DNA of 33,319 bases from Intoshia linei (Eukaryota; Animalia; Orthonectida). Made by a program: the position numbers and the translations under genes. This document shows, one piece after another, positions 387 to 31,789 of the stretch; within the stretch, counting starts at the first letter, position 1, and each line of letters begins with the position of its first letter. The notes beneath the pieces are model-generated. The model saw nothing but the letters and a program-made list of their open reading frames with translations, was not told where the DNA came from and searched no databases. Location: contig LWCA01000293.1 of the NCBI GenBank assembly GCA_001642005.1, positions 1 through 33,319 of the forward strand, read 5' to 3'.

Positions 387-3300
387 GAAGTAAATTTTTA
401 GTTACATTAATATAAAATTTATACACATTAATGACAAAAAGTATCCAATTTCTGATTAAAGAATTATAACCAATGAAAATAGACAGTAAATTATTTATTT
501 AATTTGTAGGCCTTGCCTATTGTAAATAAATTTGAATAATTCACAAACGACCTCGGAAAATTAGCATTTACATGTTAATAATATTTTTTAGCTTGTAAGA
601 TATTAGTCATCTTAATTTTTGATGGAGTCATTTCGGTTCATGTTATTTTTTTTATTTATCCATGTTTAGTATGTAATTATTTTCCTTTTATATTTAGTCG
701 AAAATATTTCCTATTAAAATAATTATAAAAAATTTACTATTTTAATTTAGACAGTAACGATTAAAACATCAATTTATTTACCTTTCATTTTTTTTTCATT
801 TTTATTTTAAATAGATGGTATTTCAACATAATAGCTTAATTAATAATGTCTAATACAAAAATTTAATAAAACAATAAAGTCGGTAAATTATTACTTACTC
901 ATCAAAATATTTAAAAATTTAAAATGTGTATAATTTTATCTGTTAAAATTATTTAACAATATTTTATAGTTGGTATAATTATGCATAAATATTTGATGAT
1001 AAAACTACAGGCATTATTTTTTTGTATTTTAATTTGTAATTTTTAATATTTAAGATAGTAAATATTTAAAATACATTTAAATGTATTTATGCAAAATATG
1101 CAAAAAAAAAATAAAATAAAAGAATAATAAATAAGAAATAAAAGAATAAAAGAAAAAAAAATAAAAATATAGTGATAATTATATTTGTTATGGATTAACT
1201 ATAATAAATGATATTGATAAATCGGACAAACAACAGTGTTTTTTATGTTTAAAGCTTTTTTCTAATTCTAATTTAAAGCAATTTTTAGCCATTCTAGATC
1301 ATTTTATTACCATAGTTACATATTAAATTTTTTCGAATTTAAGTTTTTTAATTTTTGCCGATACCAAATCGAATTTTATTGAATTAAGGGGTCCCAATAG
1401 AAAAAGGTTAAGAAACCGTGATCTAAGATGTATCGCTCTAACTATACATGACTCAAATTAATGTCGCTTAACTATGTTTGCCATTTTTATTTATTAATTT
1501 TTTACTCAGCTAGTAATGAATACATATATTCTAAAATTTCATTATCTTGTGTATATTGTATTGTTATATTGCAAAATTTTGATTTAATTTCACATATGAT
1601 GCCATAAATGTAATCCAAAACAGTTTGTAATTTACACTATTTTTATTATTAAAAATATCTGTAACACGATATATGATATAAAAATGATAATAATTGTATA
1701 CATACAGTGTATATTGTAAATGTGTATAAATTTAGATGGTACATATTTTGGCGGTATTATAAATATTTTGAATTATTATGTTACATATAAAAGTTAAGAT
1801 TGAACTTAACCAAAGGGAAATTGTGGTTTATCAAACCCTGAAAATTATACATATTTTAGAATTAATATCTATTGCACTATCTATATCTAATAAACATGGT
1901 TTATGTATGATATTAACAGGAAATATACATTTATAATGAAACACAGATGGTAAATTTAAATATTTAAAACTACTCATATTGAACTTTCATCTACTACATA
2001 GCGAGTAAATCCAATATTCAAATATTTTAAACCTTTTTGCCAAGTTTTAAATTTTTTTAGCTTGAAAATATGTTTTACATATTAATTATATAATGTCATT
2101 TATTATTATTTAGAGAGTATATAATGTTATATAATGAATATATGTAAAATTACTGTGAGATGTATTCATTTATGATAATTTCAATAATTATTAGAAAGTA
2201 AATAATAATAAATACATAATAATATCACTATTAAATAAACTCTATTTATATTTGACAATTGTAGGCAGTATTATATTAATTCATCGTATTTAATTTATTA
2301 TTTATATATTCTGTTAATTTAAAGAGGGTACATACAAATTACATACAATTACTTTTAATATTACATGATATACAAATGTAGTATATATAATTATTAACAT
2401 AAATATTTATCAATACATGTAGACGGTTATTTCATTTATTTTTTATAAATGATATACTGAATAGATTTTAATACTCTATTTAGAAATTAATGAAATTGGT
2501 AATTTAAAAATATTTATTTTTATTTAAATTATTTTAAATTACACTAATATTTACCATTTTATCTATCAATTATCTAATTTTATTCTAGAAAGTAAATAAT
2601 AGTCTTTAAAGTTTAAAATATGAAATGATAAAATATTATTTGAATATAACATTTTTTAAATTTAAATTTTTAAAATTTTATTACATTTTGTCAATAAAAT
2701 TATACATTATATTAATTTGCGTTTAGTACAAGAAAAAAAATGTAATTTTGATAAAAATAAATAGACAAACGTATAATATAAATGTTTTTTCAAAGTTCTA
2801 AAAAGATATACAAAAAATCTAATCAGTCAATATTACTAGTGTTCAAAACCAGTTTTTTTCATTTCAGAAAAAAACATAGTTTGTAGTATCATAACCGATT
2901 TATTATATACTTATTATCATTCAAATCGTGATTTTAAAGTTAAAGGAAAAAGAATTTTATGTGGCTAAATAATTACTAAATTCATTAAAAAAAATTTATA
3001 TGCAGAGGCATAAGATAAAATTAATATCTGGTTTATTATATTTAAATAATTCAAATTAATTAAAAAATCGCAGTTTCCCGCTTTACACGAAAAAAATAAA
3101 AATTTAATTTATTGTAACATTTATTGTGTTGAGTAATGTGGACTATACTTACAAGTTTATATATTTATCTTAAGAAATGTGCCCTAAGTCAAAAATAGTA
3201 GATAATAATATAATGAGTGAGTATTTAAATTAAATTAAAGATTTGAATACACCTAGAAGAAAAAAATTGTAATAAAAAAACATTTATAGATATATAGAAT

Positions 3301-6300
3301 AAAAAACGAATAAAGTGTTTTTATAAGTCAAGCTGAATAGACTATTAACGATAAAGCCGTTGAGTTTTGAATGAGAACTTATATTTTCCAAATTATCAAA
3401 CTTTCTATGTCAAAAAAGGATTAAATTAGACTCGTTAGTGCTTGACGCAATTTTATTTTTACTATAGCTATAGCTATAAATTAGCAACAATTTTCTAGTA
3501 TAGTACCGACGCGATATTCTGAAAAAAATTCGGAAACTTACCACAGTGTTAAATTATTGCTATATTGCAATTACAATTATATTCTTATAAGACACTAGGT
3601 TGACTGATGTGATGACTGACAGCACCTAGCTCTGCCGAGGGCCATTTTCATTATACCAAAAAATTTTGCTATTCACTACTATCAACTTTTTAAAGGAGTG
3701 GTTACCGAATTTATTTCAGGTGGAACCGTCATATCACATTACTTTTGACTTTAAAGTGAATTATTCTATCTTAATTTTTTTTGTTAACACATTTACATAA
3801 AGAATTTTAAAAACAATTGTTATTTCATTTTTTTAATTTATTAGACAGAATGTGTGCATAATATTAAAAATTAAATAAAAACAATCCAATCCTAAAATTT
3901 GTCATAACTAGCATAAATTTCAAAAAAAATAAAATTATAAAAACCTATTTTGTCATTTTCAATGTGATAATATGTATTCAGTAACGATTTAATAAATATT
4001 TAAAAATACAAATTATGTATCAATAATTAACGGAATTAGCACTTTATAAACATATTTCATGTGAATTTTACCAATATTGCAAAGGATTATAATAAATATA
4101 AAAATGATAATAACAAAGTTGTATTACTGTTAGTAATTCGTTGTTGTAGTTTTAATTTAAATTTTATACAAAAATATTTTGAAAATGAGAATTTGAGATT
4201 TAAAAATTGCGTAGCAATGAAAAAAATTCCGAAGGAATAAATTATATAGATTTTCACACATATTACTTAATTGGAAATGTGTAGATCGTCAATACACATT
4301 TTTGTTGAAATTGTAGGATCAATATTTACATTTTCAATTTTTATTTTAATCGAAATATTTTGAAAAATAATGGTAGATAATATATTAAAAATTATTTTTC
4401 ACCGGGAATGCGTAGATTTCTGGGGTTGAACTTTTGTATTTATATCAACTGGAATAAGCTTTATCAGACTAATCTTTATTTTTAATTTTCGGACCCTTAA
4501 TTAATTCACATTTTTTGTTTAATATATAATAATTCCAAAGTAATTAATTAGAGTAATTAAAGTTCAGATAATTAGAATTTAAACACATAAAGGTGGGTTA
4601 AAGTAATTAAGATGTGTCAATACTGATAAATTATTTTAAAATCATTGTAAACTATTATATTTTTCAATATAAAATAATACAATAAATAGATAGTAAATAA
4701 AAAATTTTTCAATATTTTGTTTATAATGATTTTAACTAAAATTTTGTAGTGAGTAATACATAAAGGAGTTTAGTACATTATATATAAAGTGTATGTTTTT
4801 AAATATTTTTGCAATTTTATATTTAACATATTATAGCTGGTATTCTTATGTAATGATACTACTTATATAAATGACATCCTATGAAAGGTATAATTTATCG
4901 AGTTGATAAAGAAATATTTTATTGAGAATGGATATGCAATGGAAATTAATATCCCTTTTGAATTATTTTGGAATGTATTGTCTCATCACTTTCTAATGTT
5001 AAAATATTATTAATAATGTTATTATAGTCAGTAAATATAAGTTTCATAATGTAGTTATTTATCATTATTATTAATTATATATTATTGTTTTACATCTTAA
5101 ATAAATGATCTAAATGAAATGGTCAACCAAAATTTATTGTTACTACATCAGTATTTTTTGCTCTATTCTATATATCTATATTAATCATGATGAAATGAAT
5201 ATTTAATATACATTTTAAAATTTAGCTGGTAAATACTTTATGTATACATAATAATTGTATAAGTTACATATAATATTGAAGAACATTTAAAATACATTCA
5301 ATTAAATTTATTCTGAAATGATTTCATATGTTCATATTCATAGAAAGTAATAAATTCCATTATGAAAAGATTTTATTCTTATATAATCTTCACGTAGAGA
5401 GTAATATATATGCAAAATTACAAAATATCAATATAATTTTTTCGATTAATTTTATATTATGATATAATTAAACATTTACAACATCAAAAATAATGTTAAA
5501 AAACTAAAACACTAAAACACTGTAGCCAGTAAATACATATTATGTATAATAATCATTATTTTCCTTATTCTAGATTATTGTATACATTATAACATGTTAT
5601 TATTTAGAACGTAATTATATAAAACATTTGTATTGCTAATCAGCATATTGTGCAATTTACCAGCAATTAAAAAATCAGTATTTAAATAAAAATTAAATAT
5701 TCATTAAAAATTAAACATTAAAATTGATTTTTTTAAATTGAGTAAATATTAATGAATTTAATTAGATTGTAATTTAATTATTTCGTATAAATTAAATTCT
5801 AAATTATAATTTGAAGGTTTTCATAAGATGAAAAACCAAGCTGACTAGAATGAGAAATAACTAAAACAGCAATTACATGTAGATCGAAAATGTATGAAAA
5901 AAATTGAAAATTTCAGTCTCGTGAAATTATATTATAGTATTCAAAATGTCTGCATTTTTTCTAATTTTATTTAATTTTAACTCAAATATTCAAATATATT
6001 TTACTTACAATTAACTACTCGTAAAAAGCTTGTGTTATTAAAATTGTAATAAATGCATATGTATTACTACTAATATATTAGTAGTTGTGACATTTTAATT
6101 TTAATTTGTAGTTAACAAATTAAATTCAAATTAATAATACATGTATTTAAAATCATTCAGTAAGTAATATGTTTTATATTTTAACTTTTTAATAATTTTA
6201 TTATTATTTAATTTAATTTAATTATTTTATTAGGGCAAGTTTTTGAAATTTTTTTAAAAAATTATAAACATGGCCCTAGAGTCTAGGGTGTGAATTTTAG

Positions 6301-9300
6301 TTGTTTTTTTGGAAATTTTATAGATAGGAACGTATAAATTCGCGTATGACAGTTTTATGGCTACACTGAAAAAACTTTTCAAAATTCCAATATATTCGTT
6401 AAATTCCTCAAGTCCCACCAGTCGGCCTAATCCCACGTTTAGAAAACAATGATCTATTTTTTCAATTTTATTGTGGTGAATATAAATTTTAATAAGATTT
6501 TCATTTTTTTTGCAATATTTTCAATTTTTTTGTAACTTTTTAGTAGCTCTAATAATAACCTAGTTATAATTATGTATTGTACTAATCATTTAGCTTGTAA
6601 ATAATTTATTTTATAATAATAGTAGACATCACAGTTACCTATAATATTATTGTACAATTATAAATCTTATATAGACGTTTCCAGTAAATTTTCCGGCTTC
6701 TAGAGAGTTACCATACTTTGCTGACTAAATTGGGTTTAATGCCAAATTAATTTTTTAATATTGTTTCGTTCCATATATTTATACGTTTTATATATATATT
6801 TACATTATAAACAGTAAGTAAATTACACTTCATGTTTAATATAAAATTAATATTTTAAATATGATTTCATAAACTGAAAATAGGTTGTAAAATATATTTC
6901 AATTTTATTTAAACTAATTAATACGAATCGACGGAAATTAGTACATTGGAATTTATAATATGAAATTTTTATACTTTCTACGAGTTTATAATATCATTTT
7001 ATTTCCAAAATACATTTTGCGCTAGATGCGTGATATATAATGGATGTGACATATGTAGTACTTTAAATACTCAATGTATTAATAGTATATTTTATTTATT
7101 AAAAAATTATAGATTGTAATTTTATACTGTATAATTTATATCGTATTTCTTAATTTAATGTCTCTCGCGCCCTATTTTTGTAATTAAAACATTGCGCAAC
7201 CCGGTTACAAAATCCTGCTGTACAGTAATATTTTGCAGTATAAAATTTTTATGCTATAATTACAATTATATAGTATAATTTTATTTAACCGAATAAACTG
7301 AAAAACCACTTTTTTATTATTTCATAAGAAGTGACTTGAAAAATATCACGCTTCGATATAAAAACTCCTATTTTATAATTTTACGTGCCAAAATCCTTAC
7401 ATAACTTATACTAAATTTTACATATATTTTATACAATGTATACTATACATGTATAATTAGAAAGTTGATTATATTGAATATCTTATATTAGTCGGTAATA
7501 TAAAGTGGTTATTGTATTGTGTACTGAGTCTCAAACATTTATAAATTTAAATTTAAAATAATTTAGATGAATGTAATACAATTAAATTGATTCATTATAT
7601 TTTATATTTATTGGAATAATTTTTTATTTTAGTCGGTAATTTCCAATAAATTTTTAAAAAATTTTTTAATAAAAAAAATGTTAAAAATTAAACTTTACAT
7701 TAAATTAATTTCAATTAGGATGTAATTACGCTACAATATACATATATAAATATATGTACTACTGTCTTTTCTCGATTATAAGCAGACCCCTGAAATACAA
7801 ATTTTCAGTGAAATTTTATACTAAATAAAATTTGAATATAAGCGCAGTTTCTGCTTGTATTCGAAAGAAAGAACTTTAAACAAAAAATAGACAACATATC
7901 AATTTATTTTTAAAAATTAACTTTCTTCATACAATACAATGTCTAATTTGAAGTTTTGCTTTCACCATATACAATATGTTGTTTATGCAATTCGTTGAAA
8001 GTAATCAGAGTTTCAAATTTTTTAGAAGCAACAAAAAATTCATTAAGATAAGGTGATTCGGAAGTGTTTTTAATATTTTCAATGTACTTGTAATGATTCA
8101 ATATTTGAAAGTAAGCTTTAATGATCAAATGTTTAAATTTAAAATACGTTTACAATTAAGTTATGTTGATTGTGATTATTGTTGTTATAGTGATTGTTTA
8201 TAAGGTAATAGCTAGATATTAGATATGATAGTGGTGTATGAACACTACAGTACTCATAATTAATGATATCAAGCGGAACCAAATATTCTTTAAGTCCTTC
8301 ACAGACCTCATTTTTTCATTTATAAGTTTCATCTCAAACAAATAGATTTTGAGAATACCCCAATATGTAATTTAATACAAATTTAACGAGTTTTTAAAAT
8401 ATAAAAGCAAACTTTTAGTGTATTTTTTATATTTTTCAAGGTCTGCTTAAAAGTCTGCTTGTTTTTGATTATAAGCATTTTTCCTTCTACTCTCGAATAT
8501 GAAAAGACTTCTTATAATCGAAAAAAGACAGTAGCTTATGATAAAATCATACCTAATTTTTGTAACTTGTTACAAAATAGGGGGTAAATAATATTGATAT
8601 TAACTAAATGTATTATATTTAATAATTATAATGATTTTATAATAATTTCAGCTTGTAATACATAATAATTAATTTTGTTTACAATTATTTAGCATTTACA
8701 TTTTACATCAATTAAATTTTTTAGTTGGTAATAATATATCGATTATTAGCCATTTTCAAATTGAATAATAAATAAGTAAACACAACTAATATACTGTCAT
8801 ATAATTTTAGAAAGTATATTTTTTAATTAATCTAGTTTATAAAACATTATTTTCATGTCTGAAATGATTATATAATCATGAACGCTTAGAAAGTAATTAA
8901 TATTATTAAGTAATAAAGTAAATAATTATAATACTAAATATTTGTACATACTAATAATACTAATTAAAATGAATACTATAATAATTATGTGTAAATACAT
9001 GCATGTATTATTATTAGCTAATTTTATGTATCTGAATACTTGTAAAGTCGTTAAAAGATTGATTTATATTAATAGTGTGTAAATATACATTTTTTTAGAT
9101 AAAAACTTTGTATAACATAGTCATAATAAATTTTAATACAAATAAATACAACATAATTATATTCAGATTGTAAGTTTTTTAATATACATGTATTTAATTG
9201 TTTTGTCTTTATATTGAATTTGTTAATGTGTTTTATTTATATGAAAGATTGTAATCATTTAATACGTTTATTAGATTAGTGTATTACTGTGGTTATTAAC

Positions 9301-12300
9301 TTTTTTGTGTAAAGCACCGTTGAAGGTTTATAATAAAGAAATAAACTCAAGATAATTTTTAACCTAATATATAAAGTGGAATGTTTGGGTAAGTATTTTT
9401 TTGATTTATTTCGAAATTAAATTAAATAATACATTTTTTATAAAGAATTTTAAGACTGGTATTATCATTAAATCTATCGTTCATGTATTTCAAATGAAAG
9501 TGGAGCCTCCACTATTTATTCCGTTATTCATATTTTAACTATTTGCAAAATAATTTTCAAAATTTAATAAAATTTTGCATGTCTTAATTCCCTGATAACT
9601 AAAATAAAATTTCAAAAAATTTACGAGTTCCAGAATTATAAAACTTATGAGTACCACAAACATAACATTTTATATGCTAAAAGTAAAAATAATTTTTATT
9701 GCAGTAAGTTTGGAAATTTTTTTTTCTAGTTAGTGCATGAATACTACTGTAGTTCACTAAAAAACTGTACACATCATATAATATCGATAATGTTATCAAA
9801 ATCAATAATAAATAGTCAGTAAATCATTAATATATTAATTTTATCATATATCATATATGTATGTCATTGAAATTATAATTGTGTTTATGTACAAATTTTC
9901 ACGTCTATCGAAGAACCAAATACAGTCATGCAGTAGAATTGGTGTATTTAAAAAAATATAAATTAACATAATAACCCCATAATAATCAAAGTATATATCC
10001 TTGAAAGTGAAAAAATTTGAAATTTTTAATATAATTCATGGATAAGTAAATATTATCGATATTACCTGAAAAAATGGGCATGTAAATCAATTTTATGATA
10101 GTTTTTATTATTTTAAATAACAAAAAATAAAAATGTACATTGTACAATAATAGTAAATCACACGTTTATTGTAAAAAAAAAACTGATGGGAGGTATTTAT
10201 TTAGCTAAAACACTAAACCTTACAAATAATACATTTTTAATTAGTTGGTAAATTTAATATAATATATTATATTATTTAAAATACATACTATGCAGTTAAT
10301 GTATTGCAGTCAGTTCATTATATTCTCAAATTTTAAGTAGACTCAAAAATAATTGAATAATTATAGTAAATATACAGTTAATTTAATATTAAGTCATTAT
10401 GAGTGTGTTACGAAATTAATTTTGGTTTTATTCTAAAATAATTAAACACTTTTCATTTTTTATATTGATACTCAAATAATATTGAATTATTAATACTATT
10501 AATTTACAAATTACGATTAATAGTTTCTAATAATTATTAGTAAACCAAATATGTTTTCCTCTGAAATTAATATTGGATAGAAACCACTATATGTCTATGT
10601 ATGTAATATAGAAAATACTAAGATCTGACTGTAAATAAATGGTTCAGTTTGTTTATATTGATTTCCAGATGGTATATTAATTTTGATGAAAACATTACAT
10701 TATATTTTTAATATAAATTTTTGAATAAAATAATATTAACAATAATAATGATATTATAGATCGTAAATTTATATTACACTTTACAGATTATGGATAATAA
10801 ATTATTATAGATCTATCAATAACTATTGCCTATTAGTTTGTAATAAATATTTAAACTTTAAAAGTCAGAATTTTTATTTTGTTAATAAAGTAAATAATGC
10901 CAATTTTCAGTGTGTAATTGAATAGTTATCATATTAATATATTATTATTAGTATTATTATAAAATAATGTTAATAAATTCTAAAAAATATGAAGGTATTA
11001 CCATTTTTATGTGTAGTTGGTATTAAATTTAAAATTAAAAAATATTAGTGATATATATAACAATTGGATACCTTTTTATAAAGTATATTTGGTAAATAAA
11101 GGGATGCAAAGTAACCATAGACTTTGGATATATTGAATAATTATAATTCACATTTTTATTTTACCAAAAAAATAAATTCACGTTGAAAATCTAGCTTAAA
11201 AATCCTACTATTGACTATTATCAATCCTTTAAAGGAGTGGTTCCCAAACTTGTTTCAGGTGGAACCGTCATATCACATTACATTTTACTTTAAAGTGAAT
11301 TATTATATTTTAATTTTGTTTGGTTAACATTTGCGTAAAGAATTTTAAAGACATTGTTATCACATTTTTTTAATTTATTTTTTTTTATATCAACTGGAAT
11401 AAGATTTATCAGAATAATATTTTTGTTTATTTTTCTGACTGTTAATTAGTTCACATTTTTTGATTGAAATTTTTTTGTGGTTTAACAGGATACAACTGTA
11501 CGACCTGTAAATTTTTTAAATTCTACTGCTATTTTCATTAAAAAAAGGGTCATTTGTGGTTTTGGCCCTAAAGATAAATTTTTTTTTAATTAAATTTATA
11601 ATAATATTTATGATTTTAAAATCCGTATCAGAGTATATATTTTTTTAATTTCTCGAACTCGTTTGATTTTCAAAAAAAATAAGAATTTGGCTTTTTGACC
11701 ATGTAAGATGTGAGTTACGGAGGTTGAAATTTATTTTGCTAACACCAGAAAAAAATTTCATTGAAATTTGGACTTTATAAAATTCTAACACAGGTAGTTA
11801 CTGAAATAAACGATGACATACACAGACAAACAAAGCATATTATATAAGTAATAATTATATTTATGAATGCTATACCTTGTTTCATTGAAACAGTATTTAT
11901 TAAATTGGAATTGTTTTATGATAAAAATTTTTAGTTGGTACAATAAATTTGTTTTTTATATGTAAAATAATAAATATGTTAATATATTAATGTATAAATA
12001 TGTTAGTCAGTAATGATTTAATATTATTATAATAAATATTATTATTAGTGTATATGTATATGTAGGTTACAGGCAAAATTCAAATTATACACGTTTTATT
12101 TGTTAAAGCAAGTATATTAAAACATTAAGCGTTGATAAATATTGGGAATATTATGAAAGATTGATAAAATTACAAAATAATGTAAATGAACCCAGAATAA
12201 AAAATGATTGGAACATTTTGAACTTATTTTTTAATCTATTATTATATTATATTTTATGTTAAATTAATTAATTAGGTCAAATTTTCAAATTTGAATTATT

Positions 12301-15300
12301 ATTCACGTTGCTTGTTAAAATTTGAAAATTGCCTGTAACATATATACTTCAGCATCATTGATATTAATAATAAATCATTTATATATATCATAATTTAGAA
12401 GGTAAAATTGATATTTTAATATAACGTAATGTGTTGTTAATTATGTTTACATTCACCAATTTAGCTTGTAATATATTTATGTTTAATTAATGGAAGCATA
12501 TACTTATTAAATATATTAATTTATGCAATATTAAGCAATTAAACAATATTTAAATTTTAAATAGACATTTTTAAATAATATTTATTCAACAATTTACAAC
12601 AATATTAATTACATTAAATTTCGAAAAAATATGTCATTTCTTAGTTTGTAAATTTATGCATTCATTTATAATTTTAATTTATAAATGCATGTAAATAATT
12701 ATTAAAAATATGAAATACACGTATATTTCCTTATAGATTGTAAATTTGAAGATAATAAAAAATTTCATTAATTTTTCCATAATTTAAATTTAAAATTTTA
12801 ACAATATATTGACACTTTATTTAAGATGGTATGTGATTTAGAATAATTTTATTTTTATTTGTGGATTCATTTTTTTAAATAATTGGCTTGATAGGAAGTA
12901 TGTTTTATATTATTTATGAATTATTAATCATAATTTATGATATATCAATTATGAACGTACAATATACTATTAAATTAATTTAATTTATTTTTTCAATAAC
13001 CGAATATACTTTATTAATAACTTAATACAATTGTCAAAAAATACGAATTTCTTATAATTAGATGGTATTACATTGTATTAATTGTATTGAGTAATATAAT
13101 TTTATATTCAAACTATTTTATTTAGATATATATATATATGTATTTATACAATTAATTATTTCAGACAGTAATTTTTATAAAAATGAAAATAAATAATAAT
13201 ATAAATCATACATAACAAAAAATGTGAGATAAAAAAATTTTTATTATTTTATATATATTTATTAGAAAGTAAAAATTTAAACTTCAATTTTCGACTTATC
13301 TTATAAATTAATAATATAATTAATAATATTAATCATGTCATTAATATATTAATACTATCAATCAATATTGATTAAATAAAAATTTTTTTTAAAATATAGT
13401 CAGTAAAAAATACACTAAACTACGTTTTAAATCAGCGGTTCATAAATGCAAGTTCAAGGTCACTAAAAATCATTATTAATAATTATTAATTACATATTCA
13501 CAGAAAAAAATTAAAAATTTTAACATTGAACCAAGAACGTACATATTTTAGTAATTATATTAAGTGGCAGTGAAAAAATTAATGTATAACTATGATTTCA
13601 AATTGCGATAATTATCGATTTGTAATGTAAAAAATTTTGAGAACTCTTGTTTTAAACAATGATTATGATAATGATAGTGTGTATAATGCAAAATTAAATA
13701 GAATGTAAATAATTTCATAAATAATAGTGTACAATTGTATATTATAATTTTGAATAAAAATAAATATTTTTATCGCAATAACTGATATGTAAATCGATGA
13801 TAAACAAATATTACCTTTTATTTAGCTTTTAACATACCAAATGTATATTAACAAAGTATATTCTTACGTGTATATTTAGTGTGTAATTTTAATTCAATTA
13901 ATACATGTGTATCATTGAAATATGTAATACATTTTGAACTCGTAAATATATTTCTTTAATTTACATAATATTATAGCCAGTAAATATTTACAACAGATAA
14001 TACAGTTTCCGGTAAAGTAGGTGGCGCGCCACCCATTTTAACTTTATATAACTACTATTGAATTAGTGAATGGAATGATAATGCGAATATAAATATACAT
14101 AATATTTATTATTTTATGCAATATACAATGTATTGCAATAAATATGTAAAATGTATATTATAAATGTAGTAGGTATTAATATATGATTTAAAATTTAAAA
14201 AATGTAATATATATTTATTTTTTTTTATATTCACGCTAGCATGTATATTTATTTTTACAATTCAGTAGACACTAGAAAAGTGATCACACGCAACGATTAG
14301 TCATTTAGTACAGGAACCAATACCATACTACAGAGTTTTATAAAACTTAAATCTTAAAAATTCTTCTTCTACAAATTCTTCTGGAACAAATTTTAAAATC
14401 ATTAACATTTTCAAACATTTTAACCTCAGAAATTTACACTATCATTGTCAACACCTCAAATTACCCCTTTGTTTGAAAATGAAAATAAATAATCAAAGAA
14501 TTATATATAACATAAATTCTGGGATAATTTTTAAAATCATAAACATTATCATAAATCGCAACCTCAAAAACTAACAGTTTCGCGATTAAAGCCTTAGATA
14601 ACACTTTTTTTAAAAAATGAAAAGTCTAAGAATTTTTTAAAAATTGCAGCTCATAGTTATTTTCAGTAATCATGATAAAAAAATAAAAAATTTAACTATG
14701 ATTTAATTTTTTTAAGGGTGTATAGTAATTTCTATAGTCAAAACAGTCATAAAGTCAAAAATCTGCCTTAAATAGTTATTCAAAAAGTTGGTTCTCTGCA
14801 GAGCTAGCTACTGTTTGAACCAATTTTTTAATACATAACAGTTTATCTGATTCTAACTAATGTGTAATAAATGCATCTAATTAATATTTCATTGGTTGTA
14901 GAAAGGTTTCTATAACAATGTGTCATTTTCGAATCTACTGAATTAATAAAAAAATTAATTTATTTTTTTAAAAAGGAAAATTTGGGACATCATTATTTGG
15001 GATTGTGATATCATCTATGGGATTAAATGTCATTATAAGCACATTTTAGATCGTAATTATATTCTGTACAAAAATTTATCAATTACCAAAATTTATATTA
15101 CATTGAACAGATATAAATAATATTAAAAAACAATAATTATAATTAATAATAAATGTTATGATTGTATTAATAACAAGTACTGATCATTATAAATTTAGAA
15201 AGTAAAAATTAAATTTTTACAAAATTATTAAAATAGAATATGTAAAAAATTACATTGATACAAACAATTACATTATAGTATGTAATACATATATTTATTA

Positions 15301-17980
15301 ATTTAATACATACAATATTATTTACTCTTTTTATTTATAATAAACGTGTAATTGACATGTATCATTTAGTAAGTAAAAATAAATTTTAGTTAATAATTAT
15401 TTGGTGTTTATTATAATAAACACTTTCATCCCCTATGTGGGACCTGGGAATTTTCAAAGTTATATGAAAATTATGAATATAATTAACACTGCATATAAGA
15501 GCAAAAGCCACAGTATCAAGACCACAGGAAACAGAGACTTCAGGGCTCAATAAAATTGATCAATTTCATAACTGTTTTGTGTGAATAAATTAAAATAAAT
15601 TAAATTTAAATTATTAAGTTTATATCCGCTCAAATGTGACTAAGGCTGTTTGGTAATATGCACCTTTTTCTATTTTTTAATGACTTATTTTTAATTTCTC
15701 TATTCTCTAAAACTTTATTTTATGTGTAAATCTCACATTTCTACTTAATTAGATGGTAATACTTTTTTCTTATACTTCATGTATACGTTTATGATTTAAT
15801 ACCTGTCGTACAGATTTCGACAACTTGGGCGATTAAAATTTTTTGGTTTCACGTTTAATAAATATTGTACAATGTATATGTTGACATGTTTTATTCAATA
15901 TTTAAAATTGATAAATATATATTATAAATAATAGATAATAATATAATTAAATTACTATAATCCATAAAAGAAAAATAAAAAATTTTGCTTATTTTTAATT
16001 ATTAGAGTCCGTTATAAATTTTTGGGGAGACGGATAGAATGTGATCAAAAAACAGAATTTTTTAATTTAGGGGGCGATAATTCAAAAAAGGTTGAGAATC
16101 CTTGATATAATGTAATAGAATAACATAATACATGCCCATATTGTATATATTACAGATGGTAACATTATATTAATGCATATGCAAAACATACTTTATAATA
16201 TAAACTTTATATTAAATATTCAAAAATGTGGCCCAAAGAATTTTTTGATATATACTAATGGCCCACGAGATGCAAAAGGTTGTCGACTCTTGATGCAAAG
16301 TTTATATTATAATATGATTAATTATACATACTTTATGTACATCTCTATTACTATGTGGAATCCACAGTGTGGATGAGAAAATAAATTACTACATGTAATT
16401 TTTAAATAAATAGACAGTAAATTATAAATAAATACTTTATACAAAATCTATAATAGGGATGATAACTAAATATAAAAATATTAACCGATTAATTAATTTT
16501 GACATATTATTAAATTTGAAAGTATGAAAATATTTCGAAAGTCTTGATTTATAAACGAAAAACTAAAAAAATCGTATGTGGAAAATATATGTTCAAAAAA
16601 TAAATCTTAAAGACCCTCATTACATTCCAGTAAAAAAGTAAACCCCTAAAAACCCTAATCATATTTTGGTTCAAAAAATAAACCTTAAAAGCCTTCATTA
16701 TATTTTGGTACAAAATTTTCTATCTTTATTTAATTTTTAATCTTCTTTAAAATTCAATGGCTGTTTTGATTTTTTAAGAAAAGGGTAATTTTTGGTTTTT
16801 GCCAAGATATACCTTTTTAAAATAACTAATTTATGTTAATATTCATAATTTTAAAATAGACATTAGAGAGTATATTTTTTTAATTTCTAGGACTCGTTTG
16901 ATTTTAAAAAAAGGATAATGTGGGTTTTTAAGGGGAAAATATATTTTTGGTTGTAATTTTCTAAAATGTGCATTGATCTTACTTTCTCATTAAAAAAATC
17001 TGACTTGGAATTTTTGTATGTTAATTTCTAGAGCTCTTAGTTATTGAAATAAACGATAACACACACTCAGGCAAACACACAAAAAAAAAGTTTTATATAC
17101 GTCAGGATATGTATTGCTTTTAATTAATTATTACTGAGGTTGAAATTTTGAAAAGATATTTTATATTGATTTTGTAACGAGAATTTACATTTTCATGTAA
17201 ATATATAACCAGTTATCAACAGGTTAACGATTTCGAGTTATTTATTATCCCTACTACTACGCTAACATGATGCATAATTTATATCTTAATAAAATAATCT
17301 TAGAAGGTAACAAAAAATGAATAATTATAATTAATTACAATATAACGTATGGTAATCAGTGATGGGACGTATTATTTGTGAATAATAATTTGTGGAATAA
17401 GTACATTGTGTCATATAAATAAACCAACTCTATATATGATATGGTTTACGAAATTATGCATAAATAATATACAATCCCATAAGTAATTTTCATTAACTAT
17501 TAATGTACATTTTTACCACAAGACTGACACTATTGACATCACTCATTTATTGTAGATACACATTCAAATTTATCTCAAATAATATAATTCAATTAAAGTT
17601 GGTATTACTTAATTATTTCATTTGATGGTGTACTACACTGTAGACATGATTGATCTATCATCATTCATCATATTAGTCATTATTATTATGATTTTAAAAT
17701 TACAGTAGAATTAAACATAGTACGTAATTTATATATTTATTATTGTGAAATTCATAATATGTGATATTGTATAGTACAATGTATAATGTTATACCATAAA
17801 TAATACATGAAGTAATTTGTACAGTGTAAAAATAAAACTTAAATAAAAAATATTTAGTGGAAGGTAATTATATATATAATAATCATGTAAAATATTACTT
17901 ATTCTTAATATATTAGAACATTATTATTTAAAGTTCAAAGAGCAAATAAAAAATAAAATAATTTTTTGATTTTAGACTAA
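387..17980 (+). CDS. Putative extreme micro-exon gene (about 82 x 3-nt exons plus 6/15-nt exons, all phase 1), 5'-partial; product unknown, about 93 aa visible
   Basis: Exons read as AG|exon|GT, start coordinate and sequence: 387 GAA, 483 ACA, 592 CTT, 670 TAT, 751 ACA, 815 ATG, 880 TCG, 970 TTG, 1055 ATA, 1510 CTA, 1624 TTT, 1736 ATG, 1947 ATG, 2002 CGA, 2114 AGA, 2195 AAA, 2265 GCA, 2325 AGG, 2423 ACG, 2484 AAATTAATGAAATTG, 2589 AAA, 2765 ACAAAC, 2880 TTT, 4690 ATA, 4750 TGA, 4837 CTG, 5028 TCA, 5226 CTG, 5344 AAA, 5398 AGA, 5526 CCA, 5608 AAC, 5766 ATT, 6161 TAA, 6594 CTT, 6815 TAA, 6884 GTT, 7113 ATT, 7492 TCG, 7567 ATGAAT, 7633 TCG, 7719 GAT, 8652 CTT, 8725 TTG, 8811 AAA, 8890 AAA, 9076 TGT, 9167 ATT, 9248 ATT, 9816 TCA, 10245 TTG, 10310 TCA, 10669 ATG, 10760 ATC, 10837 TTT, 10911 TGT, 11017 TTG, 11935 TTG, 12007 TCA, 12109 CAA, 12399 AAG, 12465 CTT, 12645 TTT, 12737 ATT, 12826 ATG, 12895 GAA, 13062 ATG, 13165 ACA, 13266 AAA, 13400 TCA, 13702 AAT, 13880 TGT, 13977 CCA, 14170 TAG, 14240 CAT, 15050 ATC, 15199 AAA, 15279 TAT, 15370 TAA, 15753 ATG, 16156 ATG, 16414 ACA, 17304 AAG, 17599 TTG, 17721 TAC, (17775 TACAAT optional), 17858 TGGAAG, terminal exon 17976 AC-TAA. 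Phase-1 translation: NTLYNVVDTIYDAKKSKDEINEIENKLYMTVTEKTKHLTLSYFDEFGSFEKMYYFIVNDLLFVVTKAFYYGNDKIKLSIAYQILNDDKVVLED*. Individual exons may be false or missed. Confidence 0.8.
1234..1420. mobile_element. Degenerate hAT-like MITE
   Basis: Starts CAGTGTTTTT and ends GGGGTCCC...AAAAAGGTTAAGAAACCGTG, resembling hAT (Charlie-like) MITE termini. It sits in the gap between micro-exons 1055 and 1510. Confidence 0.4.
3665..4520 (+). repeat. Dispersed repeat copy A (long form), hAT-MITE-like end GAGTGGTTACCGAA
   Basis: 3665-3840 and about 4440-4520 align with about 11200-11465 (shared TAAAGGAGTGGTT..TTTCAGGTGGAACCGTCATATCACATTAC and TATATCAACTGGAATAAG). Confidence 0.75.
7762..8531. mobile_element. Non-autonomous Tc1/mariner-superfamily (pogo-like) element
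   Basis: 21-bp TIRs CTGTCTTTTCTCGATTATAAG / CTTATAATCGAAAAAAGACAG (20/21 match), flanked by TA at 7760-7761 and 8532-8533. Confidence 0.85.
11200..11465 (+). repeat. Dispersed repeat copy B (short form of 3665-4520)
   Basis: Direct similarity to 3665-3840 joined to about 4440-4520. Contains GAGTGGTTCCCAAACTTGTTT, a hAT-like terminus. Confidence 0.75.
11540..11845 (+). repeat. Dispersed repeat family 2, copy 1
   Basis: Shares AGAGTATATATTTTTTTAATTTCT..ACTCGTTTGATTTT and TGAAATAAACGAT.ACA.ACAC..ACAAAC with 16780-17090. A reverse-complement copy lies at 18610-18790. Confidence 0.7.
13433..13649. mobile_element. Degenerate hAT-like MITE
   Basis: Termini CAGCGGTTCATAAA ... TTTGAGAACTCTTG form imperfect inverted repeats. 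Lies between micro-exons 13400 and 13702. Confidence 0.45.
16780..17090 (+). repeat. Dispersed repeat family 2, copy 2
   Basis: Similarity to 11540-11845. Confidence 0.7.
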
Positions 17981-18609
17981 TGGACCAGCCAAGATTAAAT
18001 ATTTTTTAAATTGTTATAGTTTTTTAATTAAATATATATATTTTTTATCTTTATACACAAAACAAACCTCTGAGTGTATACGTTAATTTTTATCACGTCT
18101 CAATGAACAATTTAAAATTTCTGAATTTTATTCAGATAGTACAATTTATGTATTATAGTATACAAATATATAATCCTAACAGGTGTCAAAACTGGATAAT
18201 TTAGAGTTATAATTAAATTCAATACTGAAAAATATTATTTTATAAATCTAAAAATATATGTGCATGGTTAACTAGAGAGACATTCTAAAAAAATGTATAA
18301 CCACGGTTTATAGTGTTAAAATAACTCAAAAATAAATTATTTAACTAAGAACTAGGGTTGCAAATTGAAATTTACTCCATAAATTTTAACGTTAAATTTT
18401 TTTTAAAATTCCAAAACTAAATTAATCTTCATAATTTATTTAAACATATTTACATTATTAGTTAAAATAGTCCTTACTTCAATAATTATAATTATAGCAT
18501 ATTATAATATGCTATGCAATATTTGTTTGTCTTTTGTTTATTTCAATAACTACCAGTCTTAAAATTATCTATATTTTATAAAGTCCAAATTTCAAATATA
18601 GTTTTTTCC

Positions 18610-18790
18610 AGGGTGTTAGCAAAATACATTTCAACCTCCCAAACCCACATACACACATCTTACGGGTCAAAAACCCAAATTTTCTTTTATTTTGAAAATC
18701 AAACGGCAATGGGCAATTAAAAAAATATACGCTGATATTGATTTTAAAATCATAAATATTATCATAAATTTAAAAAAACCATATCTTTAG
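18610..18790 (-). repeat. Dispersed repeat family 2, copy 3 (inverted)
   Basis: ACATCTTACGGGTCAAAAACCCAAATT..TTTTGAAAATCAAACG and GATTTTAAAATCATAAATATTAT are reverse complements of segments at 11600-11715. Confidence 0.65.
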
Positions 18791-18881
18791 GAGTAGTCAA
18801 ATAATCAAATAATCTCAAGTTTAGACAAGTTTAAAAAATAAAAAATAGATATAAAAATTTAATATACACTTTAAATTAATT

Positions 18882-20453
18882 TTAATTTTTCCAACGAACA
18901 TCTTTATTAGAAATGGTATTATTTGCGAAATCTAAAGCATAAGATCCTTTTCTAAGTCTAGGTAACAATTTAACAATAGATTGCCGATCTCGCCAATCCA
19001 AATATATTTGTATGATAATTTCAAAACATTCAAGCCTCTCAGCAACTTCTAGCCTAGATTGAACATTGGGAATCAATGAACAAAACCTCATAATAACTGT
19101 AGATGGAGCATTAACCTCAAAAAGAGTGAAAGCAACATCCTCAATAGTAATGACATTATCATTGATAAATTTATTAAAAATGGATTTTTTTTTAAACATT
19201 TTTTCAATTTCATCATATTCACTCCTATGTAAATGTAATTTGATAGTAACCCAACAATTTTGTTGTTTAGATATTTTAAAAATATTGGCTAATGAAGAAG
19301 CTGATCCAGTAAAATTCTGAATATTACATGTATATAAAGAATCTAAAACGGAAGAATGATCATTAAATAAAACTTTGGATATTTTCTCAGGATCATTTTG
19401 ATTCAAAGTGTGATGTTGCCATTTGACTAGATTATGGTGTTGGTTAATCATATTTAAGAGTAAATAATCATCAGTTTGAGGTATAGAAATGGAATTGTTG
19501 AGATTTGTGAAACATTTAAATTCCTTGTTGGTGGGTTCCACTGAAGACATGGAAGAAACTGAAATATTTGAAGAGAGTTTGGACGTTATTTTTAAAAACG
19601 CCACATTACTGTACGAACCCGTCTTAAGATTGAAATTATCATTTTTATCCAGAGTGTGCATTTTAGAAAAAGAGGAAATTTGATCTTTTATAGTTAAAAT
19701 AGTGTTAATGGCATCATCTGAAATGGTATACGAGCTATTATTTTTCATTAAAGCAGGATTGAGGAATTGGTAAAAATACATGATAAACGCATCTCGCCTT
19801 CTTCCGATAAGAATATAAAAATTGAACAAATCTACATAATTTTCCATTGAATCAAGATGTGAAATGTAAAGATTAATCGTAATTTGATTTCGTTTGATTA
19901 AATGAACAAATATTTCAAATCGAAAAATTTTTTTTAAATGTAGAATAACCGTTAAAATTGAATCACCACAACCCAAGGTACAAACATCCTCCAACAATGC
20001 TAAAGCGTCTTCTTTTGTTGTGACGCTTATTAGCATTGAATCAACGTATGCATTTTCAAACGAATCGTAGTCTAAATTGTATTTACTAGCTACTAAATCT
20101 CTAGCAATTTTTCGTAAATTTGCGTCAACTGAAGTGGATGGTGTGAGTCTAGATTTATATGCTATGGATGACAAATTTCTGCCGTGTTTAATCGTTTTTT
20201 TTACATTTATAAAATTACTCTTATTTGTTTCGGTATTTTGAATCTTTTTTTGAGTACTATTTTTAGGTTGTATTATTAAAACTTTTTCGTTCAATGATTT
20301 TGGTACCTGTGGAACTTTTAGTGATTTTTTAGGCTGTTTTTCTATGACTGTGTTTCCGTTCCAATCAATCAATTCATTTTTTATATTGACATCAAACATG
20401 TTTGCGTCGTTGCATTTTTGCGCAGATGAAGCGTTCCAATAATCATCAGACAT
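18882..20453 (-). CDS. VIPAS39: VPS33B-interacting protein / spermatogenesis-defective 39 homolog, intronless, about 523 aa
   Basis: 536-aa ORF, with the likely ATG at 20453 (MSDDYWNASS, compare the VIPAS39 N-terminal EYWNSS). Central KEDALALLEDVCTLGCGDSILTVILHLKK resembles the SPE-39 motif, and the family-typical C-terminus is ...WKN. Recognised from memory. Confidence 0.85.
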   Translation of the reverse strand: MSDDYWNASSAQKCNDANMFDVNIKNELIDWNGNTVIEKQPKKSLKVPQVPKSLNEKVLIIQPKNSTQKKIQNTETNKSNFINVKKTIKHGRNLSSIAYKSRLTPSTSVDANLRKIARDLVASKYNLDYDSFENAYVDSMLISVTTKEDALALLEDVCTLGCGDSILTVILHLKKIFRFEIFVHLIKRNQITINLYISHLDSMENYVDLFNFYILIGRRRDAFIMYFYQFLNPALMKNNSSYTISDDAINTILTIKDQISSFSKMHTLDKNDNFNLKTGSYSNVAFLKITSKLSSNISVSSMSSVEPTNKEFKCFTNLNNSISIPQTDDYLLLNMINQHHNLVKWQHHTLNQNDPEKISKVLFNDHSSVLDSLYTCNIQNFTGSASSLANIFKISKQQNCWVTIKLHLHRSEYDEIEKMFKKKSIFNKFINDNVITIEDVAFTLFEVNAPSTVIMRFCSLIPNVQSRLEVAERLECFEIIIQIYLDWRDRQSIVKLLPRLRKGSYALDFANNTISNKDVRWKN

Positions 20454-20612
20454 TTTATAAATGTGAAAAATTACAATGTTTAATAGTACCACTGCGATTT
20501 AACTTATTTATTTTCTTGTTGTCGTAGTGCTTAGATTTGTATACAATTTTTAGTTTATTGATTTTCAATTTTTTGGATTGAATATTTCATTTAAATAGTT
20601 TTATTTGATCAA
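20454..20612. promoter_or_regulatory. Putative bidirectional promoter between VIPAS39 and ZMAT2
   Basis: The divergent start codons are only 159 bp apart. Confidence 0.6.
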
Positions 20613-23610
20613 ATGGCTGATAATCTAAGAAAAACGTGGGATAATGAAGAATATACCAACAAGGCTTTAGAAAGAATTGCTAGAGATGGTATTAGTGATA
20701 TGGGATATAAAGAAGCTAAAAAGGAAAATCTTACTCGCAGAGATTACAAAATTGATATTGATTCTAAAATTGGTTCATCTGTTGTTATTAGCAAAGCTGG
20801 TTGGTCTGATCAGTTGAGTGGGTATATTTTATTTTTTTTTATTATTTACATGAAAAAATATTTTTATTTCCCTTCAAGGGTTAATTTCAAATTTCTTGTC
20901 TAATTTATGTTGTTTAGTTATTGAAAAATGTCCGCTTTAGTGAATAATTTCGTTAGTTTTTATTTTTTTTTTTTGATAAATTTCACATTACTCAGATGAA
21001 AAATTTTGTATTATACCAATTCACAGAAAGGAGCGTGGGAGATGAGTTTTTCAATTTATCGTATACTAAAGAAATTTATATCAGCTCGTGATACGAGGTG
21101 ATACACCCAAACTTTGACAATATTAATTTAAATAGGGGAAAATGGCCATGTTTGAATAAATTTTTGTATTATTTTTTAATTACCGCATGACATAGGAAAT
21201 GATAATTAGTAGTGTATAATATTAACGTTTTTTGTTTAGATATTATTGCAACGTTTGTGACTGTGTTATCAAAGATTCTATCAATTTTTTTGATCATATT
21301 AATGGAATTAAACGTAATTATATTATATTTATATTGCTCATTAATTATATGCATTTTTTTTCACACTTTCTATCATTTTATAATTAATTCAGTGATTTAA
21401 AATATCAGAAGGGCTTATAAATAGATACAGAGTAGTCGAAAGCTTGTATGTAATTATATCAGTTTTGTATTATGTTTATGTTTATCCACTTGGAGTATTG
21501 CATTGGATGTATTTGTTATCTCCAAACTTTCCATACCCGTAATTATTTCCATAGGGTTGAAAATATTAGCTTCGATTATAATGGAACCCAAAAAAACCCA
21601 TTATTGTAAAAAAATGTTATTACGATAACATCTTACAATTTGAACCGTAAAGATTTCATTGTTGAGAGTAGGGATTGGAATTTTGATCTATCGCAGCCAA
21701 TTCAGAATGAGTATCTAAAATAATAGACGCTAGTTTTACAATTTCTGTAGGTAGCCACACAGTAAAAACTCTGATACTATGGAAATAAAATTATTGTGAA
21801 ATTGGCCCTCATTTTTTTAAATTGTGAATTTAAAATATGAATATTTTTTAAAAAAAATTTTTAATATCAACTATTTTGATAATCAAATTTAAACTGACAA
21901 GTTCAGACCGTCACATTTTTAAAAACTAAAATTTTGGGTCGATTTTTAAAATAATCTAATTATGGGTCTTACTAAGCAGTGAATCACAGTAAAAAAATTT
22001 CTGAATCAGTCATTTTGCCATTTCATTCATTATGAAGAATTTTCTTTAATGTTAAATTTTTTCAATATCCATCATTCAAAAATCCACTTTTACCCAACTT
22101 TATGGAAAAATCCAATTTTACCAACCCTTAAAGAAAAAATCCCTTTTTGCCAAACCTTAAGGATTTTTTTTACTGTGATTCACTAAGATTTACTGTGGAG
22201 TTTACCTTAAGGTCAGATTGGTTTGGTAAAATGGGATTTTTTCTTTAAGGGTTGGTAAAATTGGATTTTTCCTTAAGGTTTGACAAAAGGGAATTTTTTC
22301 CTTAAGGGTTGGTAAAATTGGATTTTTTTATAAAGTTTGTTAAAAGTGGATTTTTGAATGATGGATTATGAAAAAATTTAAAATTAAAAAAAATTATTCA
22401 TAATGACTGATTCAGAAAATGACATTTTCAAGATATAAATTACAAACTACCCCTTATTTAAAAAAATTTAAAAACTGAGTCTTAGAAATTAAAAATCTCA
22501 ATGCTAATATTTATTTTCAGTTAACACATTCAAAAAATTGAAGTATCACGTAATTAAACCTTTACCATCAAAAAAGAATTTTACATTTTACTCTTCTTTT
22601 TTACCATCAAAGTGGAAAGTTATGAGACTACATCAGCCTTGAAAAGCTGTATTATAAATTTTGTTTTGTACAATTCAAAGACTGATTTAGCACATATATT
22701 CAACTGTATGTAAATAAAGATTTCAAATTAATCATTTTTTTAGACCAAAAAAATATGGGAATGTCTATGAAAATTGAACGATCATCTTTGTCAAAAGTTA
22801 AAGAAAGAATTGCAGCAAATAAACGCAAATTATTACAGAAAGTACCCAAGTATGATTTTGAAAAACAAATAGAAGATGTCAGAAAACATGAAACTATCAA
22901 GCGAGACGCAAAACGTACATATTTAAAGTTTCAATTAATTTTGTGTTTAAAGTGTGACGTAGATTAGGCCCGTGCTAGATGGAAATTATAGGCCCCATAT
23001 TAATTTATTTAAAATGGAATCTCTATACTTGCTTAATGGATCGTTCATTATCTAAAAATTAAAAATAACTAATCGGACTGTTAATATAACATTCTATTAT
23101 ACGATAATTTTGGTATACTTGAGAAATTTTTCAACATTACCTAAAATTAAATTAAAATTTTAGGTCCGGTCAATACGGCCTCGGTATATAACGCTGTTGA
23201 TAATAAAAAAAAATTTGGTCATGGAACTTATAGTAAAATCAACTTTAATGTTTATAAAATAAAGATATATTTACTAAGAATTTTTCACGCATCACACGCC
23301 CCAGGGTTCACAAATCGACTTGAAAATGCTTGAAATAAAAATGGTACATACTGTATTTGACGTTTAATCGACATTAAATGTTAATAAAAACCTTGAATAA
23401 ATTTAAATGTCCTCAAAATTATTTTATTTGATATTGATTATATTCCAAAATTTAGGAGATAAACGTTTCAAAAAACGCCAACAACAGAGTGAAAAGAAAA
23501 AGAAAGAAGAAAAAGTTGTTCAACCCGATTCCACTGAAGCTGATGAAATTTCAAAAGTTATGGGATTTTCATTTTTTGGTGGAAAAAAAACACAAATAGG
23601 AAGAAACTAA
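20613..23610 (+). CDS. ZMAT2: Zinc finger matrin-type protein 2 (Snu23; U4/U6.U5 tri-snRNP/B complex), 4 exons: 20613-20821, 21240-21313, 22744-22914, 23456-23610
   Basis: Contains [22 protein letters not shown], the zinc finger [41 protein letters not shown], and C-terminal VMGFSFFGG. All GT-AG junctions keep the frame. Confidence 0.95.
21977..22420. repeat. Foldback / long inverted repeat with about 30-bp subrepeats, in ZMAT2 intron 2
   Basis: About 22025-22160 is the reverse complement of about 22220-22405 (AAAAATCCAATTTTACCAACCCTTAA vs TTAAGGGTTGGTAAAATTGGATTTTT). A second inverted pair is AGTGAATCACAGTAAAAAAA (about 21977) / TTTTTTTACTGTGATTCACT (about 22164-22183). Confidence 0.85.
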
Positions 23611-23803
23611 AAAACCACCAATACAATCGAAAATTATTCATGTCTATTAAATTTGTAAATATAAAATTGATAATTCTGAATTTTAAATGTTGTTAATAAA
23701 TAAATTTTCAATATAAAACACTTCCTTACTTTTAATCTATAATCTTAATGTAGTATAATTTTTTCGTTTTAAATTTTATATAAATTCAATTTTTTAATTT
23801 AAA

Positions 23804-31761: not shown

Positions 31762-31789
31762 CTAAATAAAGTATATAATAAAATAACAT

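Follow-up and report, generated by a model that had tools for sequence, protein, structure and literature searches.

A stretch of the Intoshia linei genome that very probably encodes one gene made mostly of three-nucleotide exons

How finely can a gene be divided by introns and still be expressed? The question is raised by contig LWCA01000293.1 of the orthonectid Intoshia linei (GenBank assembly GCA_001642005.1), analysed here over its whole length of 33,319 nucleotides (nt) and referred to as the window. A preliminary description, made from the sequence alone, had proposed that about 18 kb of its + strand, at 387–17980, is a real gene built of about 82 exons of 3 nt each. On the evidence given below, we conclude with good confidence that the region from 387 to about 18035 on the + strand comprises the greater part of a single gene that is expressed and very probably codes for a protein, with about 78–88 exons separated by phase-1 introns; about 95% of the exons have a length of exactly 3 nt, and the others have 6, 9 or 15 nt.

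An array of this kind was expected to leave a simple mark, namely a sharp excess of acceptor-like AG and donor-like GTA separated by exactly three nucleotides, on the + strand only. We tallied AG-N(k)-GTA for k = 0–12 on both strands, separately in 387–17980 and in 18900–33319. On the + strand of 387–17980 the counts from k = 0 to k = 12 were 9, 14, 3, 86, 5, 4, 10, 7, 7, 13, 5, 4 and 8, and at k = 3 the − strand of the same region gave 8 and the 18900–33319 region 10 (+) and 11 (−). The predicted peak is thus present and specific to both strand and region (86 against a background of 3–14 at the other spacings, on the − strand and in the remaining window), and its height agrees with the claimed number of about 82 splice-like triplets. 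About 8 of 87 AG-NNN-GTA sites are estimated to be due to chance, and the density of the sites is even from 387 onward. For the stricter pattern TAGNNNGTAA the window gave 52 matches, 48 of them on the + strand between 480 and 17727, whereas 100 dinucleotide-preserving shuffles gave 5.15 ± 2.26 and none of them reached the observed count; the expected excess over shuffled sequence is therefore real. The base composition was also close to the earlier estimate of about 0.4 for A and T and about 0.1 for G (measured A 0.397, T 0.399, G 0.107, C 0.097), and the three triplets quoted as examples (ACA at 751, ATG at 1736 and ATT at 9167) agree with the sequence.

The flanks of the triplets resemble those of ordinary introns. 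Across the array the sites read (T)AG-NNN-GTA(A)(A/T)(T), and the introns of an adjacent zinc-finger gene have GTATAT or GTAATT donors and a TTTAG acceptor; the array and this gene use the same signals, which are therefore the ordinary splice signals of the species. Moreover, AG is depleted five-fold in the final 25 nt before the acceptor (0.65 versus 3.25 per 100 nt), and such a depletion is classically seen at genuine 3' splice sites. In the exon model described below, the introns run from GTA to TAG; their lengths extend from 51 to 2098 nt, with a median of 109 nt and a 10th–75th percentile range of 67–226 nt, in keeping with the typical spacing of 55–120 nt given earlier. As had been claimed, the locus is not a satellite. 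Tandem Repeats Finder reported short low-complexity arrays and none of intron-sized period, and an all-against-all BLAST of the 55 introns of up to 200 nt found similarity at the level of shuffled sequence, with neighbouring introns no more alike than others; significant intron pairs were formed solely by long introns sharing common interspersed repeats. Satellite origin and tandem duplication were thus rejected. The repeats, listed here, have tens of copies elsewhere in the genome and swell the long introns, which explains the large gaps in the exon array; their presence both in long introns and at the contig start probably accounts for the break of the assembly inside the gene.

1–101, 1156–1430, 2837–3000 and 18050–18138: interspersed repeats, 5 to >40 genomic copies, 73–98% identity

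The introns do not appear to be the functional product. Short introns (n = 47) fold no better than their shuffles (mean z −0.2; mean folding energy −7.9 kcal/mol) and Rfam has no match anywhere in the window; a host gene of mirtrons, small nucleolar RNAs (snoRNAs) or other small hairpin RNAs was therefore rejected.

To define the exons, acceptor and donor matrices were trained on the sites, all AG...GT pairs enclosing 1–60 nt were enumerated, and the best exon chain was found by dynamic programming from splice scores alone, with a minimum intron of 40 nt and the reading frame ignored. The chain was then edited at two sites (17599 added, 16867 removed) to fit the RNA contig discussed below. The resulting model comprises 77 symmetric micro-exons. 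Seventy-three of these measure 3 nt and the remaining four 6–15 nt, so that the proposal of a gene made of 3-nt exons applies to 73 of the 77, the other four having 6, 9 or 15 nt and one proposed site, 16867, being absent from the transcript. The window contains 260 coding nt, of which the micro-exons of 3–15 nt account for 255, and exons make up 1.8% of the locus, below the 2% that had been put forward as an upper limit. When strong-site filters were applied, the exon candidates of other lengths were mostly multiples of three. The model leaves out 13 AG-NNN-GTA sites, and single exons upstream of 15199 are provisional members of it. Its features are as follows.

387..17863, + strand: micro-exon array, from the k = 3 peak, the splice-score chain and two RNA-based edits
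387–2589, + strand: 3-nt exons starting at 387, 483, 592, 670, 751, 815, 880, 970, 1055, 1510, 1624, 1736, 1947, 2002, 2114, 2195, 2265, 2589
4690–6884, + strand: 3-nt exons starting at 4690, 4750, 4837, 5028, 5226, 5344, 5398, 5526, 5608, 5766, 6161, 6594, 6815, 6884
7113–9816, + strand: 3-nt exons starting at 7113, 7492, 7633, 7719, 8581, 8652, 8725, 8811, 8890, 9076, 9167, 9816
10245–13062, + strand: 3-nt exons starting at 10245, 10669, 10760, 10837, 10911, 11935, 12007, 12399, 12465, 12645, 12737, 13062
13165–17721, + strand: 3-nt exons starting at 13165, 13266, 13400, 13702, 13880, 13977, 14170, 15050, 15199, 15279, 15370, 15753, 16156, 16414, 17304, 17599, 17721
2484..2498, + strand: 15-nt micro-exon, acceptor score 2.6 and donor score 3.2; the phase-1 frame stays open
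6675..6683, + strand: modelled 9-nt micro-exon, splice scores 1.8 and 3.4
7567..7572, + strand: modelled 6-nt micro-exon, splice scores 2.6 and 2.0
15199..15201, + strand: 3-nt exon, its last two letters opening the examined RNA overhang
15279..15281, + strand: 3-nt exon, in the X1 transcript contig
15370..15372, + strand: 3-nt exon, in the X1 contig; reads TAA, not a stop in the phase-1 frame
15753..15755, + strand: 3-nt exon, in the X1 transcript contig
16156..16158, + strand: 3-nt exon, in the X1 transcript contig
16414..16416, + strand: 3-nt exon, in the X1 transcript contig
16867..16869, + strand: AG-NNN-GTA site, skipped or false exon, missing from the X1 contig
17304..17306, + strand: 3-nt exon, in the X1 transcript contig
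17599..17601, + strand: 3-nt exon, in the X1 transcript contig; missed by the score-only model
17721..17723, + strand: 3-nt exon, in the X1 transcript contig
17858..17863, + strand: 6-nt exon, in the X1 transcript contig
17976..18035, + strand: terminal exon, in the X1 contig; last base of TAA at 17980, the rest 3' untranslated region (UTR)

Are the triplets joined in a transcript? Contigs of the public run X1 were placed on 13000–18999, and words were sampled over 12000–21000. A contig of 574 nt with a depth of 337 matches 17974–18035, in minus orientation, without a difference and leaves an overhang of 512 nt to the left of 17974. The 30 letters of this overhang that were examined equal, letter for letter, the last 30 joined letters of the gene model: the last two letters of 15199–15201, the eight exons of 3 nt starting at 15279, 15370, 15753, 16156, 16414, 17304, 17599 and 17721, in this order, and the first four letters of 17858–17863, the remaining AG of this last exon coinciding with the acceptor AG at 17974–17975. 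The second of the joined sequences written down in the preliminary description, before these data were seen, is found in this overhang at the terminal-exon acceptor. Splicing of at least eight complete 3-nt exons, part of a ninth (15199) and one 6-nt exon, spread over 2.7 kb, is thus supported by X1. The same contig joins 16414–16416 directly to 17304–17306, so that site 16867 is absent from it, and contains exon 17599, which splice scores had not retrieved. Since its overhang of 512 nt is longer than the 255 modelled exonic nt, one transcript can carry the whole array. It is the sole contig reaching the terminal exon and is unbranched; rare variants get dropped from contigs.

The coverage of X1 suggests the nature of the library. 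The run contains 22% of the sampled words of 12000–21000, and inside the 887-nt intron of the array perfectly matching pieces (16500–16665 and 16676–16859) have a depth of 2–4. The neighbouring gene, an intronless open reading frame (ORF) of 536 codons at 18882–20492 on the − strand, is an expressed orphan gene covered by an X1 contig of 1602 nt and depth 195, which begins 9 bases inside the ORF, at 18891. Contig depth in X1 is a poor measure of expression; the contrast in depth between exons and introns, together with the low share of words, makes the X1 pattern that of a transcriptome and not of genomic DNA.

Thus, the proposal of a real gene stands as far as the last ten micro-exons are joined in an X1 contig, and needs correction in that the gene is incomplete here, its 5' end and start codon lying outside the contig. 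At the 3' end, the UTR in the terminal exon has ATTAAA at 17992 and 18026; the X1 contig stops at 18035 and the true 3' end may be slightly beyond. At the other end, positions 1–386 contain no open first exon in the right phase, the window being the whole contig. There is no start codon and the contig starts with a 101-nt repeat, and the 5' exons therefore lie elsewhere. The best repeat match to the first 98 bases of the window lies in the interior of contig C1847, which is 24.9 kb long and free of any array, and C1847 was rejected as a link to the 5' part.

Is the joined RNA a message? In the score-only model, built with no regard to frame, frame 2 (phase 1, with introns following codon base 1) runs without a stop from the first exon until it meets a TAA 5 nt inside the terminal exon, and 85 codons are open also after the RNA-based edits. 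Ahead of the terminal exon, 5 stops interrupt frame 0 and 12 interrupt frame 1. The raw set of 87 sites has 1 stop in frame 2, against 5.2 expected from exon-order shuffling (p = 0.01), and this stop arises where 13678 is joined to 13702, two sites that lie 24 nt apart and so cannot be used together. Composition points to the same frame: the third, first and second nucleotides of the exons resemble, respectively, codon positions 1, 2 and 3 in the 536-codon ORF next to the array, and the codon-usage log-odds is +21.9 bits for frame 2 and −22.6 and −52.2 for the other frames, the frame-2 score being reached by 0.65% of shuffled exon orders. Read in frame 0, the triplets include eight stop triplets, with TAA, TAG and TGA all among them, and the literal form of one codon per exon, with 5–6 in-frame stops, was rejected. 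What remains of that earlier claim is the splicing of 3-nt units; each of them consists of two bases of one codon and one base of the next. The model yields 85 residues of the C-terminal part of the product, in which Lys, Asp, Glu, Ile, Tyr and Phe are abundant and Cys, Pro and Arg absent. The 3-nt exons are too short to be searched for similarity one by one; by analogy with the micro-exon genes of flatworms, the product may be a parasite-specific, possibly secreted small protein.

The window is not the only place with such a signal. In the 41.6-Mb assembly a triple-site pattern occurs at 82 places, compared with 27 for a reversed control, and these places cluster on about 18 contigs, among which the window ranks highest with 12. 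The 14 other contigs that were examined all have a k = 3 peak on one strand, with 11–50 sites against about 5 at other spacings. When stops are summed over these 14 contigs, frame 2 has 11 where 21 are expected, while frames 0 and 1 have 33 and 35. Judged from sequence patterns, this suggests a genome-wide class of about 15–20 such loci, with several hundred 3-nt exons in the 41.6 Mb. DNA similarity, on the other hand, did not lead to paralogues, since the copies found comprise no more than the terminal exon together with the 3' part of the intron before it and the flank downstream; the C767 copy, on a short contig, and the C1965 copy have no usable upstream micro-exon array, and there is none near the C1965 copy.

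Contigs C1593, C516, C1037, C970, C2698, C1522, C197, C2340, C2186, C1428, C2327, C2237, C752 and C2300, one strand: k = 3 peak, 11–50 AG-NNN-GTA per 5–16 kb
C767 1201–1504, − strand: copy of the terminal exon with the 3' part of the last intron and the downstream flank, 76% identity, acceptor kept
C1965 4357–4501, + strand: decayed copy of the same parts, 82% identity, acceptor AG changed to AA

Could these observations be explained in another way? Chance, a satellite that has degenerated, and a single long intron containing ratchet points, recursive sites of zero length, have the very AT-rich composition in their favour and nothing else, and we discard all three: the observed count was reached in none of 100 shuffles, the introns are mutually dissimilar and form no tandem array of their size, and recursive zero-length sites would appear at k = 0, which is at background (9 sites, against 86 at k = 3), while the triplets are kept in the X1 contig. 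The contig might also report not RNA splicing but a joined form that exists as DNA, produced as a processed retrocopy or by programmed DNA elimination. The X1 record would allow this, as it does not state the run type, and a rearrangement of genomes has been reported in dicyemids (PMC6543705), simplified invertebrate parasites that are not close kin of orthonectids in the phylogeny of the same paper. Nevertheless, the transcriptome-like coverage of X1 (the 1602-nt contig of the neighbouring gene, the intron depth of 2–4 and the 22% of words), the GT...AG ends and AG-exclusion zone of the skipped segments, and the fact that a retrocopy would itself prove that splicing took place make this very improbable. 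Little credence can be given, in the same way, to the view that the 3'-most micro-exons alone are used and the upstream sites are other genes or unused decoys. The RNA letters examined do cover 15199 onward, and site 16867 is a good-looking site that is nevertheless unused; against this stand the 512 nt that the contig has upstream of the terminal exon, more than all modelled exons together, the phase-1 frame that is open across the whole array, and the uniform density of sites from 387 onward.

Less improbable is a spliced non-coding RNA, in which the 3-nt exons would be real and the joined RNA untranslated, the act of splicing or the introns being what matters, as in a host gene. No start codon, homologue or domain is known, frame 0 has eight stop triplets, and the avoidance of stops at this locus taken by itself reaches only a p of about 0.01. 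We consider it unlikely all the same, given the open frame of 85 codons closed 5 nt into the last exon, the codon-position composition and codon usage that fit the phase-1 frame alone, the fewest stops found in this frame at 14 other loci too, and introns that, being unstructured and without an Rfam match, are no precursors of hairpins or snoRNAs. As for the expressed, protein-coding gene that we favour, several points weigh against it. X1 appears from its coverage to be an RNA library, the run type not being stated in the record. The RNA match covers 30 of the 512 overhang letters, and the exons upstream of 15199 rest on statistics; likewise, the 255 modelled exonic nt leave roughly half of the 512 nt in the contig unplaced, and these ~250 nt may be on another contig or in overlooked exons. 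The introns of the array have no branch-point motif or pyrimidine tract above the AT-rich background. The coding evidence is statistical, with a p of about 0.005–0.01 at this locus, and it is accompanied by no known start codon, signal peptide, homologue or peptide. Finally, the ordered removal of introns proposed below is drawn from steric reasoning.

To place such a gene among known ones we searched the literature. The full-text search, which did not extend to the Intoshia genome paper (Curr Biol 2016), found no paper on 3-nt exon arrays or on micro-exon genes of orthonectids. In the papers searched, no gene split this finely is described, as the preliminary description had maintained for genes made almost wholly of 3-nt exons, and the nearest parallel is offered by the micro-exon genes (MEGs) of flatworms. 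Flatworm MEGs have 10–20 very short exons of 6–81 bp, most of 15 bp and mostly multiples of three, and a signal peptide (PMC10526429). The locus resembles the MEGs of Schistosoma mansoni and other flatworms in that nearly all of the coding sequence lies in tandem symmetric micro-exons with lengths in multiples of three, followed by a conventional terminal exon with the stop, in a parasite host, and overlooked by annotation pipelines. Here tandem micro-exons (≤36 nt) carry most of the coding sequence, the exon lengths are 3, 6, 9 and 15 nt in one phase and a single open frame, and the conventional 3' exon (17976–18035+) contains the stop (TAA ending at 17980) and the UTR. By contrast, about 95% of the exons are 3 nt long, with ~80 in a row, instead of 10–20 exons mostly of 15 bp; the introns are mostly short (median 109 nt) instead of 100–5000 bp; and the host is an orthonectid, not a flatworm. 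The locus thus shares the architecture of MEGs in a far more extreme form, and we do not assign it to the MEG families, the likeness being one of architecture.

Isolated micro-exons are known as well, such as the 3-nt micro-Ex8 of Drosophila homothorax (PMC7392893) and plant micro-exons of 1–15 nt (PMC8831610). They agree with the present case in showing that exons as short as 3 nt or less can be included by a spliceosome; they differ in being single, between neighbours of normal size, and often alternative. In the array the neighbours are also 3 nt long, so that no flanking exon can help to define a 3-nt exon. A further parallel is the recursive splicing that long Drosophila introns undergo at ratchet points, reportedly described by Burnette et al. 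in 2005 and Duff et al. in 2015. There too an acceptor stands beside a donor, the donor acts only after the upstream intron is gone, and removal is stepwise; however, the exon has zero length and leaves no trace in the mRNA, whereas here the spacing is 3 nt and the triplets stay and are read as code.

How could such an array be spliced? The introns would be ordinary spliceosomal ones with GTA(A/T) donors and (T)AG acceptors. A 3-nt exon would fall inside the footprint of the donor factors and abut the acceptor, and exon definition would be impossible; as acceptor- and donor-side factors can hardly both occupy it, we infer that the introns are recognised singly and removed in order. Intron definition would act on the short introns, and each donor would become usable once the upstream intron has left, when it adjoins a long ligated exon. 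Formally, this would be recursive splicing in which 3 nt are kept at every step. The mature RNA would retain every triplet, each exon would complete one codon (bases 2 and 3) and begin the following one (base 1), and the frame would close at the TAA of the conventional terminal exon.

The remainder of the window contains other genes and repeats. About 2.5 kb downstream of the micro-exon gene, at 20613–23607 and 23854–24470 on the + strand, there are two tandem diverged copies of the small zinc-finger gene mentioned above. They share three blocks: one starting (R/T), a C2H2 finger of zf-met type 'CN(V/I)C...KDSI.F.DHING.KRN', and 'GMSM...R(S/T)L.QV(K/R)ERI'. Their layout is, we presume, that of the U4/U6.U5 tri-small nuclear ribonucleoprotein particle protein SNU23/ZMAT2, and the presence of spliceosome-like zinc-finger duplicates beside a micro-exon gene may be a coincidence. 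The 536-aa ORF product has no Pfam domain, and its sole database match is the window's own predicted protein. At 18580–18780 the depth of X1 contigs rises to 2298 at 90–95% identity, with many joints to 14409–14570 and 16870–17041; the picture resembles that of a family of interspersed repeats with abundant transcription, and there is no Rfam match. The other features are the following.

24966–25196, + strand: exon with a CUB domain
27272–27511 and 31793–32389, + strand: Tc3-type transposase helix-turn-helix remnant and DUF4371 (transposase-associated) fragments

What, then, would a gene of this kind mean? All exons are symmetric and in phase 1, so that any subset of them can be skipped with the frame intact. 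One could imagine the small exons as a generator of diversity at single-residue resolution where host and parasite meet, in which ~80 exons would give astronomically many variants and the ~15–20 loci would be a dedicated system, possibly with an adapted spliceosome; we regard this idea as doubtful. Models of exon and splice-site recognition presume room for factors at both ends of an exon, and if ~80 consecutive 3-nt exons are spliced accurately and abundantly, the spliceosome can manage with essentially no exon. The locus would then be a natural system for ordered, intron-defined splicing, and it raises the question of how almost every codon acquired an intron, and each time in the same phase. 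Such genes escape gene finders, spliced aligners and protein-to-genome aligners and, therefore, 'gene deserts' in this genome, and perhaps in other AT-rich parasite genomes, may hide expressed proteins.

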